From Octopus bimaculoides (taxonomy: Eukaryota), in the NCBI RefSeq assembly GCF_001194135.2, contig NC_068993.1, positions 20,968,748 through 21,032,747 on the forward strand: 64,000 nucleotides of DNA, written 5' to 3'. Position 1 is the first letter of the stretch. Each line of letters opens with the position of its first letter. Positions 13,109-37,284 of this stretch are shown in pieces. Both the position numbers and the translations under genes were made by a program. The notes below the pieces were generated by a model, which was given only the letters and a program-made list of their open reading frames with translations, made no database searches and was not told where the DNA came from.

Positions 13109-13114
13109 TATAAA
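13109..13114 (+). promoter_or_regulatory. Candidate TATA box of the prepropeptide gene
   Basis: TATAAA lies ~30 nt upstream of an ATG-free stretch that ends in a good donor, cag|gtaaat. Confidence 0.3.
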
Positions 13115-13139
13115 GCTGAGAGTTTTAGCCTAGAAAATA

Positions 13140-13220
13140 ATCTTCGCATAACTTTTGGAAGACACCAACTTCGGCCGTTGTCACCAGGTTCACTTTTTCC
13201 ATTTCACCAGCTATCGACAG
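13140..13220 (+). other. Candidate non-coding first exon (5' UTR)
   Basis: Contains no ATG and ends at the donor cgacag|gtaaat. The coding exon at 17629 starts at an acceptor, so an upstream exon is required. The start coordinate is approximate. Confidence 0.3.
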
Positions 13221-13304
13221 GTAAATGAGATCAGTTTCATTATTTTTCTAAATCTACTTTTGTCACTATTACATTTGCTTCACGTGAGTTGCTATCTAAT
13301 TTAT

Positions 13305-13697
13305 TCTTTTCTACTCCAGGCACAAAGCCCGAAATTTTGGGGGAGGGGGGGGGCAGTCGATTAGATCGACCCCAGTACGTAACTGGTACTTAATTTGCTG
13401 ACCCCGAAAGGATGAAAGGCAAAGTCGACCTCGGCAGAATTTGAACTCAGAACGCAAAGACAGTCGAAATACCGCTAAGTATTTCGTCCGGCGTGCTAAC
13501 GTTTCTTATTTCTTTATTGCCCACAAGGGGCTAAACATAGAGGGGACAAACAAAGACAGACAAAGGGATTAAGTCGATTACATAGACCCAGTGCGTAACT
13601 GGTACTTAATTTATCGACTCCGAAAAGACGAAAGGCAAAGTCGACCTCGGCGGAATTTGAACTCAGAAAGTAGCGGCAGACGAAATACCGTTAAGCA
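13305..13697 (-). mobile_element. Two tandem copies of the tRNA-derived SINE
   Basis: ccccgaaaggatgaaaggcaaagtcgacctcggcagaatttgaactcagaa occurs at ~13400-13450 and a near-identical copy at ~13620-13670. Confidence 0.9.
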
Positions 13698-13863
13698 NNN
13701 NNNNNNNNNNNNNNNNNNNNNNNNNNNNNNNNNNNNNNNNNNNNNNNNNNNNNNNNNNNNNNNNNNNNNNNNNNNNNNNNNNNNNNNNNNNNNNNNNNNN
13801 NNNNNNNNNNNNNNNNNNNNNNNNNNNNNNNNNNNNNNNNNNNNNNNNNNNNNNNNNNNNNNN

Positions 13864-14270
13864 CGTTACACATACATGTACGTAACCCCGCCACACTCCC
13901 ATGGTTTTTCTTTCTTTACTATCATACATACATATATACATTCATACATACATAACTATATGCATGAGAATACATACATGAAACAAAACATACAAATCTG
14001 CACATGCACTGGCTCCAAATACCGTACAAAACTGAATAATGGTATGCATACATACATACATACATACATACATACATACATACATACATACATACGTACG
14101 TACGTACATACATACATACATAAACTGACTCCAAATCTCCACATATACACAAATACATGCAGAAATGCCCTATTGATGTGGAAATTCTAGTGGAGGAGTC
14201 TTGGATCTAGGTTAGAAATCGGTTCTTTTTCTATTGCCAAGAAACCTTAATAATGGCATACATACAACAT
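13864..14270 (+). mobile_element. 3' UTR remnant of the (CATA)n-tailed R4/Dong family
   Basis: ttggatctaggttagaaa..ctattg..aagaaa matches the reverse complement of 2530-2630; interspersed (CATA)n. Confidence 0.75.
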
Positions 14271-14274
14271 ACAG

Positions 14275-14840
14275 GGTTGCTAGATGAATTCTTTGTTTTT
14301 TTCTCCACTTATTTTAATCCCATTGCCAGTTTTCACAGACGAGACAATAATATATTCTCCTTCATTGATCACGATGTCTTACCAACATTCCATTAGCTTG
14401 TCAATGCCTTGACGGTAAAAATCACTTGGATTTTACTTGAAAAATGAAGCGACCCACATTTTCAGCTCCACGTTCTTTTTTAACGAAACACCTCACATGC
14501 TGTTGGAGATTGCCCGTTAAAAATGGTGATAATCTGATGGCGCCTAGCCAGAAGGTACGGTAGAACTTCGCAACTCTGTTCTTGAGCAGTATTTTTTAAT
14601 AAAATTAGCAACGTAGGGTGGGCGTTGTCGATTTGGAGGAAGCATACTGTTACACCTGTTGGGTAAATTCAGTTGGATTACCTTACTGGGCGTATAACCC
14701 TGCATTGACTTGTAGTTGTTTTCAAGTATTTCGAAGAGGATTATCCCTTCTCAATCTCACCAAGTGCAGATCATTGTCTTGCGTCAATACAGCTCCGGCT
14801 TGGATCGAAATGTTGCTCGCTTGTTTTACGATTGCTTTTA
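14275..14840 (-). mobile_element. Degraded mariner, 3' half
   Basis: The minus strand reads SKPELY*RKTMICTW..EGII and, at the C-terminus, FYRQGIDKLMECW*DIVINEGEYII. Confidence 0.75.
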
Positions 14841-34240: not shown

Positions 34241-34274
34241 AATAATAATAATAATAATAATAATAATAATAATA

Positions 34275-35149
34275 CCAAACGAACTTAAAAACCAGAAAAA
34301 AGAACAGAATTTATCTGACTGGCAGGAGAAGGCGTTGCATGATAGATTTCCAAAAATACTTTCAGCAAATAGTAGTAGTGAGACATGGTTATGGTTGTAG
34401 AAGGGAAAGCTGAAGAGGGAAATAGAAAGTTTATTAGTAGTTGCACAAGATCAAGCATTAAGGACTAATTGGATAAAAGCCAAAATAGACAAAAATCAAG
34501 TAGATTCCCAATGAAGATTATACAAATCAAAAGAGGAAAGTGTTACTCATACAGTAAGTGAATGTAGCATGCCGGCGCAGAAAGAATACGAGAAAAGACA
34601 TTACAATCTAGGGAGAGCAATCCAGTGGGAGCTGTGTAGAAAGCTAGGATTTGAACATAGTAATAAATTCTATGAACATGAACCTAATAAAGTTCTACAA
34701 TGTAAGAAATATAAGATGTTGTGGGACTTTAACATTCAGACTGACAGAGTAATAGAATGTAGAAGGCCTGATTTGATAGTAGTCGATAAAGAGAATAGAA
34801 AGTGCCAGATAATTAACTTTACAGTCCCAAATGATGATAAAATTAATAGGAGAAGTATAGAAAAAATAGTGAAGTACCAGGACCTACCTATTGAATTACA
34901 GAGACTATGGAAAGTGCGGGCAAAATGTATCCCTGTAGTTATCGGTGCATTAGGAACTATCCCTAATCATCTGAACAGATAGATTGAGGAAATAGGCATA
35001 AAACCCAGTTTTGTAGAGCTGCAGAAAACAGTGTTATTAGGGACAGCTAAGATGTTCTTGGCATCTAAGAGGGTTCTTGGCATCTAAGGCTATTTGTAGC
35101 CTGATGTTAAGATTTTTTTTCCAACAGTCTAATCTGTTGAGTGTATATG
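34275..35149 (+). mobile_element. R4/Dong-type 3' fragment, third family
   Basis: ORF 34569-34982: KRHYNLGRAIQWELC..LWDFNIQTDRVIECRRPDLIV..IPVVIGALG. (TAA)n on both sides. Confidence 0.92.
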
Positions 35150-35210
35150 AATAATAATAATAATAATAATAATAATAATAATAATAATAATAATAATAAT
35201 AATAATAATA

Positions 35211-35705
35211 GTTATTAGAAAAGCGAAAATAGGATATGTACTTGGTGGAATTAAGATAAACCATCTGTTATTGATGGATGATTTTAAGCTATTTGTGAAA
35301 GATGAGCAAAAAAAACTGACAGCTTAACATCTACTACAAACCTGATTAGTCAGGATATTGGGATAAAAGAAATATGGAACTGTAACCTTAAAATGTGGAA
35401 AACTAAGAAAAAGTAGAAGTATTGAGCTTGCAAATGACCAAATGATTAAAGAAGTGCGAGAGGAAGCATACAAGTGTTTGGGAGTCTCTGTGATGGATTA
35501 GATCAAAGAGAAAGAAATGGAGATATTAAAAAAAATAATACATCTCAGGCTGGTGAAACTTACTATCATCTAAACTGAATAGAAGAAATAAGATCAAGGC
35601 AACGAATACAGGGGCTGTGTCTCTCATGCTCAATGGGGCTGAAGTTATTAAATGGAAGAAAAATGAATTAGAAAGTATTGATAGGAAAACGAGGAAATTT
35701 TTGAG
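35211..35705 (+). mobile_element. R4/Dong-type RT/thumb fragment
   Basis: INHLLLMDDFKLF followed by thumb-region remnants; begins after (TAA)n. Confidence 0.75.
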
Positions 35706-36800
35706 ATTGTCAAATTCTTTTATCGAAATATTAAGATCACAAAGGATACTCATGTCGATCAATAAATAGACATAATCATTTTCGTCTTTTGCAACAATAT
35801 CCGGCTTATTAGTCTTGATACTACTGGCGGTATGTAGTGGGAAACCCCAAAGAATTGTTACATTTTCTCCCCTCAGTTACAGTCACAGTTTGGTGCTTTT
35901 ACCACTTGTCAACGGTTTTGATTTTATGATACCGACATATCAACTATTGACCAACTCTGTTATGCCTTGATCTATACTCCTCTGGTGCTAAAACTTTACG
36001 TCCAGAGATTAAGTAGTCTACTTTTTCAATCTCATCATTGCAGAATCGTTATTTTGGATCGACTCCATTTTTCATCACCATGACTTGATTGTTCCGGCTC
36101 AATAAGCTTCGAGATTGAACCACTAAGATGGAGTCTTCGCCCTCTATCTTTAGCTCTGAACTCCGTAGCTACTAATGAGTGTGCTTCTGGTCAACATTAG
36201 CTTGTTTGCTACGGGCCACACATTTGCCAGCCATTTGTTCATGTGCTCTTTTCTTTGCCATTAATTTTATTTTGTTTGCAGCATCAGTTGCCACCCTCGA
36301 CTCATGCTGTCCAGCCTGGTTATCACCCTCGAAATCAATAGCAAATGTTTTGTTCTCCTTCAAGAAATATTGAAGCTTTTTACGATTATCGTGATTTTCA
36401 ACCAGTTTTAGCATCCAATCGTCAGTTGTTTCAAGATATTCGGTCAGTTCAGTTGTGGTAATTTTACAAGAAAGCTCAAACTGGATAAAGTCTTGACCTC
36501 CATCGGCTATGGAAAGGTAAAAAAACGATCCACATCAGCTTTTGGGTGGTGCATCTTATTACAAATTAGAAGTTTACGAACTTTCCTGTCAATTTTTTTC
36601 AACTTTAAGTAACAACTATAAGTAAGCAGCTATAAGTAGCAACAGGAATTGCTAAGGAATTTATGGCAAGAATACTCGAGCTCTCTTATAACATTCCTTC
36701 CTGATCTCTTTTTTCATATTTACATGCTGGATGCTAGAGCCATAATTAATTCCTAGGTTTGTTCTTGCTGAAGTTCTTTTATAACTGTTTCAACATTTAA
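35705..36800 (-). mobile_element. R4/Dong-type C-terminal fragment, opposite strand
   Basis: Minus strand NVTILWGFPLHT..IKTNKPDIVAKDE..LIDMSILCDLNISIKEFD; ORF 36172-36414 covers the post-RT region. Confidence 0.75.
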
Positions 36801-37083
36801 CATCTTACGACAAACGTATACCCAATCTATCCTAAAATGTCAGGACAGCGATATCTCTTAACCCTATCAGAAGTAGAAAGACCATACAAGCAAGCAAGCA
36901 GCACACACACACACACACACACACACACACACACACACACACACACACACACACACACACACACACACACACACACACACACACACACACACACACACAC
37001 ACACAACACATTGCAACGAATCACTGAATGTCTTCATCCCATATCTCAGTACTTATGGCGTAATATTTTCTTCAATGATTCAG

Positions 37084-37190
37084 GTAAACGTTTCGAAGAA
37101 AGAGCAAATAACGGCAGAAAGTTGATGCAACTCGAACCTGACATGAGGAATCCTCACTGGGGCTCCCAAAATAAGGATAGCCATGGATAA
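37084..37190 (+). CDS. Terminal coding exon of the candidate prepropeptide
   Basis: Acceptor atattttcttcaatgattcag; phase 1 gives (G)KRFEERANNGRKLMQLEPDMRNPHWGSQNKDSHG*. AATAAA follows downstream. Confidence 0.55.
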
Positions 37191-37278
37191 AAGGTGGAGA
37201 TGAATCCCGCAAGTTAAGAAGAAAACTGCTATTAATGACTGTAAAAAAAAAAAAGTTTTGTATTCTTACACAATGGGA

Positions 37279-37284
37279 AATAAA
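37279..37284 (+). terminator. Candidate polyadenylation signal AATAAA
   Basis: 89 nt after the stop at 37190; a second AATAAA at 37474-37479. Confidence 0.4.

Follow-up and report, generated by a model that had tools for sequence, protein, structure and literature searches.

A window of 64,000 nucleotides of the Octopus bimaculoides genome (NC_068993.1, positions 20,968,748 to 21,032,747 of the forward strand; all positions below are counted from the first letter of this stretch) contains three candidate coding exons that, read directly from the sequence, join in phase 1 to give an open reading frame of 91 residues. The frame resembles generic amidated precursors in its predicted signal peptide, short acidic spacers, Gly-dibasic sites and terminal Gly, and in being encoded by a small multi-exon gene with a microexon. 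It is plausible from these features that the gene encodes a lineage-restricted prohormone precursor, and we give roughly even chances to its being a real, small, lineage-restricted O. bimaculoides gene for a secretory prepropeptide of about 90-100 residues. The exons, AG/GT sites, phase-1 joins and 91-residue frame are exactly those proposed in the initial annotation, and the multi-exon structure that it claimed is supported by a published gene model that uses the junction between exons 1 and 2. The gene is not hidden, as had been thought, since UniProt has listed it as a predicted protein, with another 3′ end, from the 2015 annotation onwards.

Exon structure and the shared N-terminal region

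Coding exon 1 (17629..17787, forward strand) lies between the acceptor ttttacag|A and the donor TGA|GTGAGT. Its start codon, the ATG at 17646, has an A at −3, and by translation the exon covers residues 1-47 plus the first base of codon 48, reading as a signal peptide at residues 1-25 followed by VPLNEERMEAPRM-GK-DTKTSIL. Coding exon 2 is a microexon of 27 nt (27853..27879, forward strand) with a strong acceptor (ttttatag|G) and a strong donor (TGG|GTAAGA); it encodes (S)RKLIQRAL(G), and the frame is preserved if it is skipped. The proposed coding exon 3 (37084..37190, forward strand; acceptor gattcag|G) encodes (G)KRFEERANN-GRK-LMQLEPDMRNPHWGSQNKDSH-G and ends with the TAA at 37188-37190. UniProt A0A0L8FXX0, an uncharacterised O. 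bimaculoides protein of 101 residues, corresponds at 100% identity to exon 1 joined to exon 2 when the latter is read past its donor as far as the stop at 28016, and its residues 1-47 are identical to the exon 1 product. The model behind it independently uses the same ATG, the donor at 17787 and the acceptor at 27853. The read-through extension (27880..28016, forward strand, 100% match to A0A0L8FXX0) encodes (G)KRNAASDNQGLHFVIGPISLCDKKLKNSDVKLPKSAQKTNSFRG and a stop. The first 59 residues are thus common to both possible mRNA forms and comprise the signal peptide (1-25), VPLNEERMEAPRM-Gly-Lys-Asp, the basic stretch DTKTSILSRKLIQRAL and Gly-Lys-Arg.

A cleavable N-terminal signal peptide, as claimed before, is predicted by heuristics. 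Its coding part (17646..17720, forward strand; MNALNTFSLVTFIFIYSLSVYITEA) has a hydrophobic core at residues 6-21, with a 9-residue Kyte-Doolittle maximum of 2.66, the −3/−1 rule is satisfied at 25|26 (TEA|VP), and the AlphaFold2 model places a helix at residues 3-25. The n-region contains no K or R. Furthermore, of the window's 187 first-ATG ORFs with 45 codons or more, exon 1 alone is signal-peptide-like, under thresholds set post hoc.

The Gly-Lys-Arg that had been proposed to follow the basic peptide is present at residues 57-59, but the claim that only the splice junction creates it is wrong, since read-through across the exon 2 donor, G|GT AAG AGA, encodes the same three residues. The donor GGTAAGAG itself reads as Gly-Lys-Arg, and the site for amidation and cleavage is therefore retained in both forms. 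Glycines lie preferentially before a basic residue or a stop: in the pro-region of the 91-residue form K, R or the stop follows four of the five (shuffle p = 0.009), compared with three of five in the read-through form (p = 0.07), and exon 3 contributes two further Gly-basic or Gly-stop sites. The 16-mer DTKTSILSRKLIQRAL carries a net charge of +3 and is helical from residue 47 in the prediction.

Processing would presumably follow the established prohormone pathway, from which the steps below are taken. After removal of the signal peptide, prohormone convertases would cut at KR and probably also at the R-x-x-K site, carboxypeptidase E would trim the basic residues, and peptidylglycine alpha-amidating monooxygenase would turn the exposed Gly into an amide, at an assumed neuronal or endocrine site of expression. 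The shared region would yield a peptide ending in -APRM-NH2, with a PRXamide-type C terminus, together with DTKTSILSRKLIQRAL-NH2, and the 91-residue form would add two candidate amidated peptides, FEERANN-NH2 and LMQLEPDMRNPHWGSQNKDSH-NH2. Release of MEAPRM-NH2 would require an N-terminal cut after a single Arg that lacks a basic partner at −4, −6 or −8; the 13-mer VPLNEERMEAPRM-NH2 is therefore more probable.

Alternative 3′ ends

We propose that the exon 2 donor would be used in at least one isoform, joining exon 3 to give the 91-residue form, and that the annotated form of 101 residues may be either a second isoform or an unspliced artefact. Among 7145 AG sites on both strands, a good acceptor coincides with a phase-1 Gly-dibasic only at 27853 and 37084. 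The number of exon-3-like sites expected downstream is 0.28 for an acceptor with a Gly-dibasic, 0.054 with an added ORF of 35 codons or more and 0.0075 (about 0.01) with an AATAAA within 150 nt as well; for these, as for all our chance estimates, the criteria were chosen after the candidate was seen. The AATAAA that had been noted after the stop is found at 37279..37284 (forward strand), 89 nt past the exon 3 stop, with T/GT-rich sequence after it. On sequence statistics only, exon 3 is unlikely to be a chance occurrence.

It is possible, although we consider it doubtful, that the gene has two exons as annotated in A0A0L8FXX0, with exon 2 running to the stop at 28016 and exon 3 being no more than an acceptor that arose by chance with an open frame behind it. 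In that case GGTAAGAG would resemble a donor only because Gly-Lys-Arg is encoded there; indeed, GGT AAG for Gly-Lys can be reasoned to create a strong donor core automatically. The published model is identical to the read-through, and the frame stays open for 42 codons past Gly-Lys-Arg and ends in Gly-stop. Such a length is unusual (about 5% by chance, as estimated from base composition), an argument that the real form may be the annotated one. Downstream, there are many plausible acceptors with an in-phase open frame behind them, and 14 sites equal exon 3 when only acceptor score and ORF length are compared. The exact 91-residue product was not found in a collection of 15 billion proteins or in any other database searched. 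However, exon 3 also supplies an in-phase (G)-Lys-Arg, the feature that, combined with acceptor, ORF length and AATAAA, brings the expectation down to its lowest value. Furthermore, no AATAAA occurs within 1259 nt downstream of the read-through stop, where an ATTAAA is found at +512, beyond a 10-N gap, and the Gly-basic enrichment of the read-through form is the weaker of the two.

Relation to known peptide families

No homologue of the precursor was found in 1.84 billion representative proteins or in a word search of 5.8 billion clusters, no relatives in metagenomes, no matching Pfam family and no relative in the PDB. These collections thus give no sign of conservation, by which a small gene is usually judged to be real. 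The earlier view that no known family could be assigned agrees with these protein, Pfam and PDB searches. The octopus precursor differs from generic amidated precursors in having no recognisable orthologue in any taxon searched, and also in that its candidate peptides are each single-copy rather than repeated.

Residues 33-39 (...MEAPRM-G) end a candidate peptide with Pro-Arg-X and an amidation Gly. The core that a molluscan NmU/PRXamide receptor needs is a PRXamide at the C terminus of a peptide with five or more residues (PMC7749107), a length that the octopus candidate reaches. The PRXamide echo that had been suggested for this peptide has real precedent in lophotrochozoan myomodulin precursors, whose PRXamide modules the hexapeptide PRMGKD matches. 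Against a profile of 29 such modules it scores 9.2 bits, a value reached by 2 of 20,000 shuffles, and exon 1 is the top match to the profile among 1253 six-frame fragments of the window. Like the octopus sequence, myomodulin-2-type modules (for example QPPLPRY-NH2, Aplysia MMG2-DPb) have P-R-X followed by Gly, a single Lys or Arg and an acidic residue, as well as a single Arg a few residues upstream, and in Platynereis myomodulin (...DVPRM-GKD) the hexapeptide PRMGKD is identical. However, the match is confined to these six residues: the octopus precursor lacks the conserved R-Q-x-P-L part and the (M/L)LRL-amide repeats, and is one-third to one-fifth the length of the Idiosepius, Octopus vulgaris and Crassostrea myomodulins. 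Homology to myomodulin precursors was rejected, since Smith-Waterman alignments with these three were no better than those of shuffles (p = 0.10-0.65).

Pleurins (…YPRI/V-NH2) have an aromatic residue before PR, which the octopus peptide does not. SCP precursors carry the peptide directly after the signal peptide, as does the octopus precursor. The C-terminal tripeptide PRM before Gly is likewise common to the octopus peptide and sCAP (xYLAFPRM-NH2; PMC7749107, Table 1), whereas the YLAF core is absent from the octopus peptide. In contrast to both sCAP and pleurin, the octopus cleavage signal is monobasic, not dibasic, and database searches found no similarity to either.

The DH44/ELH/CRH-type family of lophotrochozoans is reported missing from cephalopods (PMC6425005), so a likeness to it was worth testing. 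The octopus tail ...RKLIQRAL-GKR recalls the Pinctada DH44/ELH/CRH-type ...LRKKLIAL-GKR, and the distance from signal cleavage to amide, 31 residues, is comparable to that of the family, whose shortest peptide in the profile has 26. Homology was nevertheless rejected: the profile of 33 family peptides gives −1.1 bits, equalled or bettered by 84% of 5000 shuffles, the LS(I/V)N..L..LA..ML signature is absent, where the profile also has a C-terminal R.LL.L-amide, and neither Pfam CRF nor Pfam ELH matches even at E ≤ 10. Nor does the 16-mer show the raised helical hydrophobic moment of cationic amphipathic antimicrobial peptides, its value being 0.29 against a shuffle mean of 0.295.

We regard it as unlikely that the product is instead a secreted non-neuropeptide, such as a salivary or venom, skin or sucker, or antimicrobial peptide made with the same convertase and amidation machinery. 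The charge and predicted helix of the 16-mer would suit such a peptide, and the conserved neuropeptide families do not fit. Orphan, fast-evolving small secreted peptides are, as a matter of general knowledge, typical of venom and immune repertoires. However, DTKTSILSRKLIQRAL, whose hydrophobic moment equals its own shuffle mean, lacks the pronounced amphipathic helix of lytic peptides, and the precursor has no cysteine framework. Furthermore, other known cases of the PRX-Gly-Lys-Asp module are in neuronal precursors, those of the slug being expressed almost exclusively in the CNS (PMC7749107).

A spurious or non-coding model is similarly improbable, although hydrophobic ORFs and splice-like sites are common in AT-rich, repeat-laden DNA, the setting here is one of transposon remnants and microsatellites, there is no homologue, Pfam family or PDB relative, and the product is missing from the part of a mollusc neuropeptide survey available to us, a survey that screened the O. 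bimaculoides protein set; against it, several independent prohormone features coincide within 59 residues, including the only signal-peptide-like ORF of 187, a doubly encoded Gly-Lys-Arg, the Gly-basic enrichment and the fit of PRMGKD to the PRXamide-module profile, alongside strong splice sites and an ATG-free candidate 5′ UTR.

More tentatively, and with rather less than even odds in our judgement (about one chance in four), the gene may be an octopod-specific neuropeptide gene that has no molluscan counterpart, includes a PRM-amide, and has a donor, GGTAAGAG, made of the Gly-Lys-Arg codons, with exon 3 re-encoding Lys-Arg. Because Lys-Arg is doubly encoded, spliced and unspliced mRNAs would then yield the same pair of amidated peptides, each mRNA with its own C-terminal partners. 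If so, a PRM-amide, an NmU/PRXamide-type ligand, would have arisen outside the sCAP, pleurin and myomodulin genes. The published view is that the complexity of the cephalopod nervous system was not accompanied by new peptide families, the survey having found almost no lineage-specific neuropeptide innovation in cephalopods; its authors admit that a homology-based approach would miss lineage-specific families (PMC6425005). An octopod-specific gene would be a counter-example to that view (PMC6425005). If confirmed, an orphan octopus prohormone would show what homology-based surveys miss and would offer the many orphan GPCRs of cephalopods a candidate ligand, a PRXamide-type peptide included; if untranscribed or unconserved, it would be a further spurious small model in a genome rich in repeats. 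Its present value is as a corrected, testable annotation, with a signal peptide, predicted cleavage products with [M+H]+ masses and two alternative 3′ ends.

Upstream region and repeat surroundings

A TATA box and a UTR exon had been put forward upstream of exon 1. The TATA-like box TATAAAG is read directly at 13109..13115 (forward strand), and the candidate 5′ UTR exon (13140..13220, forward strand, start approximate), joined to 17629-17645, contains no ATG; it ends at 13220 rather than 13219, the donor CAG|GTAAAT lying at 13220/13221. Alternative TATA-like motifs occur at about 17519 and 17549, and transcription could instead start from these, beside exon 1.

The sequenced letters are interrupted by gaps in a (CA)n run of intron 1 (26203-26315), a (TA)n run of intron 2 (28255-28264), a transposon ORF of intron 2 (32488-32497) and a repeat upstream of exon 1 (13698-13863). 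The reading frames are free of gaps, the closest to any coding feature being 239 nt off, and an extra exon may lie inside one of them. The gene is surrounded by transposon remnants and microsatellites.

The TATA box, candidate 5′ exon and donor recur in an inverted copy (4919..5114, reverse strand, 77% identity), in which the TATA box is kept. This copy opens a colinear inverted duplication, with further blocks at 14043-14273/2727-2512, 14383-14509/587-464 and 14718-14822/297-193, and a paralogous coding exon, if any, would lie to the left of the window.

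Gene structure and match to an orphan protein

Exon 1 (17629-17787, + strand) follows the acceptor ttttacag, has its ATG at 17646 (A at −3) and closes with the donor TGA/GTGAGT; exon 2 (27853-27879, +), a microexon, lies between the acceptor ttttatag and the donor TGG/GTAAGA; and exon 3 (37084-37190, +) follows gattcag and has TAA at its end. These are the three exons proposed by the initial annotation, and joining them in phase 1 reproduces its 91-residue sequence exactly, with the AATAAA it noted 3′ of the exon-3 stop lying 89 nt downstream. The TATA box and untranslated exon it placed further upstream are also both present, as TATAAAG at 13109 (+) and, after it, a candidate 5′ non-coding exon (+) that lacks any ATG and has the donor CAG/GTAAAT, but this exon ends at 13220, one base later than had been implied. 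A (GTAT)n microsatellite (about 17820-17870) begins ~35 nt past the exon-1 donor. Four program-flagged assembly gaps, at 13698-13863 (in a repeat), 26203-26315 (in a (CA)n run), 28255-28264 (in a (TA)n run) and 32488-32497 (in a transposon ORF), all lie in repeats and are intronic or upstream; the nearest is 239 nt from a coding feature, and none is crossed by a reading frame. A further small exon could lie inside a gap.

Contrary to the initial claim, the gene is not hidden: it already corresponds to a predicted protein. Among 5.8 billion protein clusters the sole match is UniProt A0A0L8FXX0 (P0001), an uncharacterised predicted Octopus bimaculoides protein of 101 residues, which is 100% identical to exon 1, exon 2 and the read-through past the exon-2 donor to the stop at 28016. 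The match identifies the window as O. bimaculoides DNA, and it independently backs the predicted start codon, the 17787 donor and the 27853 acceptor. Exact look-ups in a 15-billion-protein collection returned neither the 91-residue product nor an 82-residue variant that skips exon 2, and an exact look-up for contigs encoding P0001 found none on record. In the literature, no paper was found for KLIQRAL or A0A0L8FXX0, and "RALamide" retrieved chloralamide papers only; the portions of the mollusc neuropeptide survey supplements that were available contain no match. Beyond the database record, the new elements are the prohormone reading of an already predicted orphan protein and an alternative terminal exon.

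A predicted amidated precursor and its PRXamide module

Residues 1-25 have a hydrophobic core, and the TEA/VP site meets the −3/−1 rule for signal-peptide cleavage. Of the window's 187 ORFs with 45 or more codons, counted from the first ATG, this one alone passes a simple filter that asks for a signal peptide and then a hydrophilic region. A single-sequence AlphaFold2 model gives helices at 3-25 and 47-72 (mean pLDDT 69.6). Under established prohormone processing rules, an R-x-x-K site followed by Asp would yield VPLNEERMEAPRM-NH2 (predicted amidated [M+H]+ 1570.783), and the same rules predict DTKTSILSRKLIQRAL-NH2 (1842.128) as a second product; the corresponding mass for LIQRAL-NH2 is 712.483. 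FEERANN-NH2 (878.412) and LMQLEPDMRNPHWGSQNKDSH-NH2 (2519.167) would be products of the 91-residue form only. The shorter MEAPRM-NH2 (733.348) suggested initially is less likely, because it needs a cut after a lone Arg that lacks an upstream basic residue. The hydrophobic moment of the basic 16-mer coincides with the average over its shuffled versions, which weakens its reading as an amphipathic antimicrobial helix.

The initial annotation had further remarked on an echo of molluscan PRXamide endings. Lophotrochozoan myomodulin-type precursors contain R-Q-x-P-L-P-R-Y-G-[KR]-[DE] modules, and the PRMGKD of the octopus product is identical in Platynereis. A profile built from 29 module sequences scores the octopus pro-region at 9.2 bits, a value reached by 2 of 20000 shuffles, and across 1253 six-frame fragments of the window the PRXamide profile ranks exon 1 best; the match spans just six residues. 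The NmU/PRXamide receptor of the slug Deroceras is activated through a core that consists of a C-terminal PRXamide carried by a peptide of five or more residues; the genes known to supply such peptides are myomodulin-2/3, pleurin and sCAP, whose expression is almost entirely restricted to the CNS (PMC7749107). The module match and the Deroceras data thus supply the echo with a concrete precedent, one that covers the unusual Gly-Lys-Asp site as well; the likeness does not extend to homology of the precursor. Homology to myomodulin or DH44 precursors was rejected except for the six-residue PRMGKD module, as Smith-Waterman comparisons with these precursors were no better than shuffles (p=0.10-0.65).

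The DH44/ELH/CRH family, reported missing from cephalopods (PMC6425005), was also considered. By eye, both ends of the octopus 31-mer, which runs from the signal-peptide cleavage site to the amide, resemble bivalve DH44, with VPLNEE.RMEAPRM similar to IPLSLNGDLRMLARML and RKLIQRAL-GKR similar to LRKKLIAL-GKR. A profile of 33 peptides (De Oliveira et al., Supplementary note S2; PMC6425005) rejects this identity, scoring −1.1 bits, with 84% of shuffles equal or better. In agreement with the initial failure to assign a known family, no relative was found by HMMER among 1.84 billion representative proteins, in a metagenome scan, or among Pfam families and PDB sequences (both E<=10), and tblastn found no paralogue within the window. 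The O. bimaculoides visual-system atlas describes manually found peptide genes, pxfv, lxgkr and flri, whose definition rests on repeats; those repeats are missing from the present gene. The initial observation is essentially correct, and its interpretation as a secreted amidated precursor is reasonable but unproven; the gene is best regarded as a possible amidated secretory peptide precursor.

Two candidate 3′ ends

The 3′ end may instead be exon 2 read through to the stop at 28016. This is the published gene model, its frame is open for 42 codons (~5% by chance, on our own estimate from base composition), and its GGT AAG codons resemble a donor automatically. The GKR had been held to be created only by the splice junction; the read-through G/GT AAG AGA likewise encodes Gly-Lys-Arg, so that GKR does not depend on splicing alone, and we single out as notable that the spliced and read-through forms encode the same tripeptide. 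Against the read-through, its stop is followed by no AATAAA for 1259 nt. A good acceptor combined with a phase-1 Gly-dibasic site occurs at 2 of 7145 AG dinucleotides on both strands, those of exon 2 and exon 3 only. Judged only by acceptor score and ORF length, exon 3 is equalled by 14 downstream sites, which favours the published model. The expected number of sites with acceptor and Gly-dibasic in the 36 kb downstream is 0.28; requiring an open frame of 35 codons or more lowers it to 0.054, and requiring an AATAAA within 150 nt as well lowers it to 0.0075. As the criteria were picked after the candidate had been seen, the 3′-end figures are indicative only. Exon 3 also contributes a GRK site and a terminal Gly, and Gly precedes K, R or stop in 4/5 cases in the 91-residue form (shuffle p=0.009) versus 3/5 in the read-through (p=0.07). 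Our reading is that one or more isoforms are spliced to exon 3.

A long (CA)n run (about 36960-37007) ends ~75 nt before the exon-3 acceptor; because of it the exon-3 frame meets no stop for 115 codons upstream, a possible trap for ORF-based callers. An internal duplication relating exon 2 plus read-through to exon 3 (RKLIQ.. and RKLMQ..) was not supported, the DNA alignment being no better than shuffles and the protein comparison giving p=0.06.

Surrounding duplication and repeats

Four colinear blocks make up the segment 13083-14822 (+) and recur, inverted, at 5114-193 (−) with 72-80% identity, forming an inverted segmental duplication. The candidate TATA box, 5′ exon and donor fall within the first block; TATAAAG and AG/GTAAATGAGA are retained in both copies, and the candidate exon is conserved between them no better than the adjoining intron. 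Coding exons of the left-hand copy, if any, would lie beyond the window, and a head-to-head paralogue may lie to its left. The left copy adjoins a gap (5120-5219).

The introns hold transposon remnants, including several LINE-like ORFs. A mariner-like remnant (15896-16282, −), lying between exon 1 and the candidate 5′ exon, is a 128-aa ORF whose HTH domain is of the Mos1 transposase type (PF17906, E=2.6e-15). Three intron-2 ORFs (32063-32539, 33534-33917 and 34569-34982, all +) have the common motif ..ILWDF.IQTD......RPD[IL]VV.DK......I.D[VF] and probably represent a single transposon-encoded domain in several copies; one of them weakly resembles, below threshold, the bunyavirus L-protein N-terminal endonuclease family (PF15518, E=6e-4). 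GC-richer, SINE-looking repeat units occur at 17000-17400 and 13310-13697, where ARAGORN detected no tRNA, as in the window as a whole; around 13370-13670 there are two copies of near-identical gaccc(c)agt(a/g)cgtaactggtacttaattt..gac.ccgaaa.ga.gaaaggcaaagtcgacctcggc.gaatttgaactcagaa units. A 325-aa reverse-transcriptase ORF at 61131-62108 (−; PF00078, E=5.7e-31) is a LINE-type retroelement fragment, and a 120-aa Arg/Ala-rich ORF at 10841-11203 (+) has a weak STPR repeat match that is sub-threshold, below the gathering score (PF21107, E=4.4e-5).
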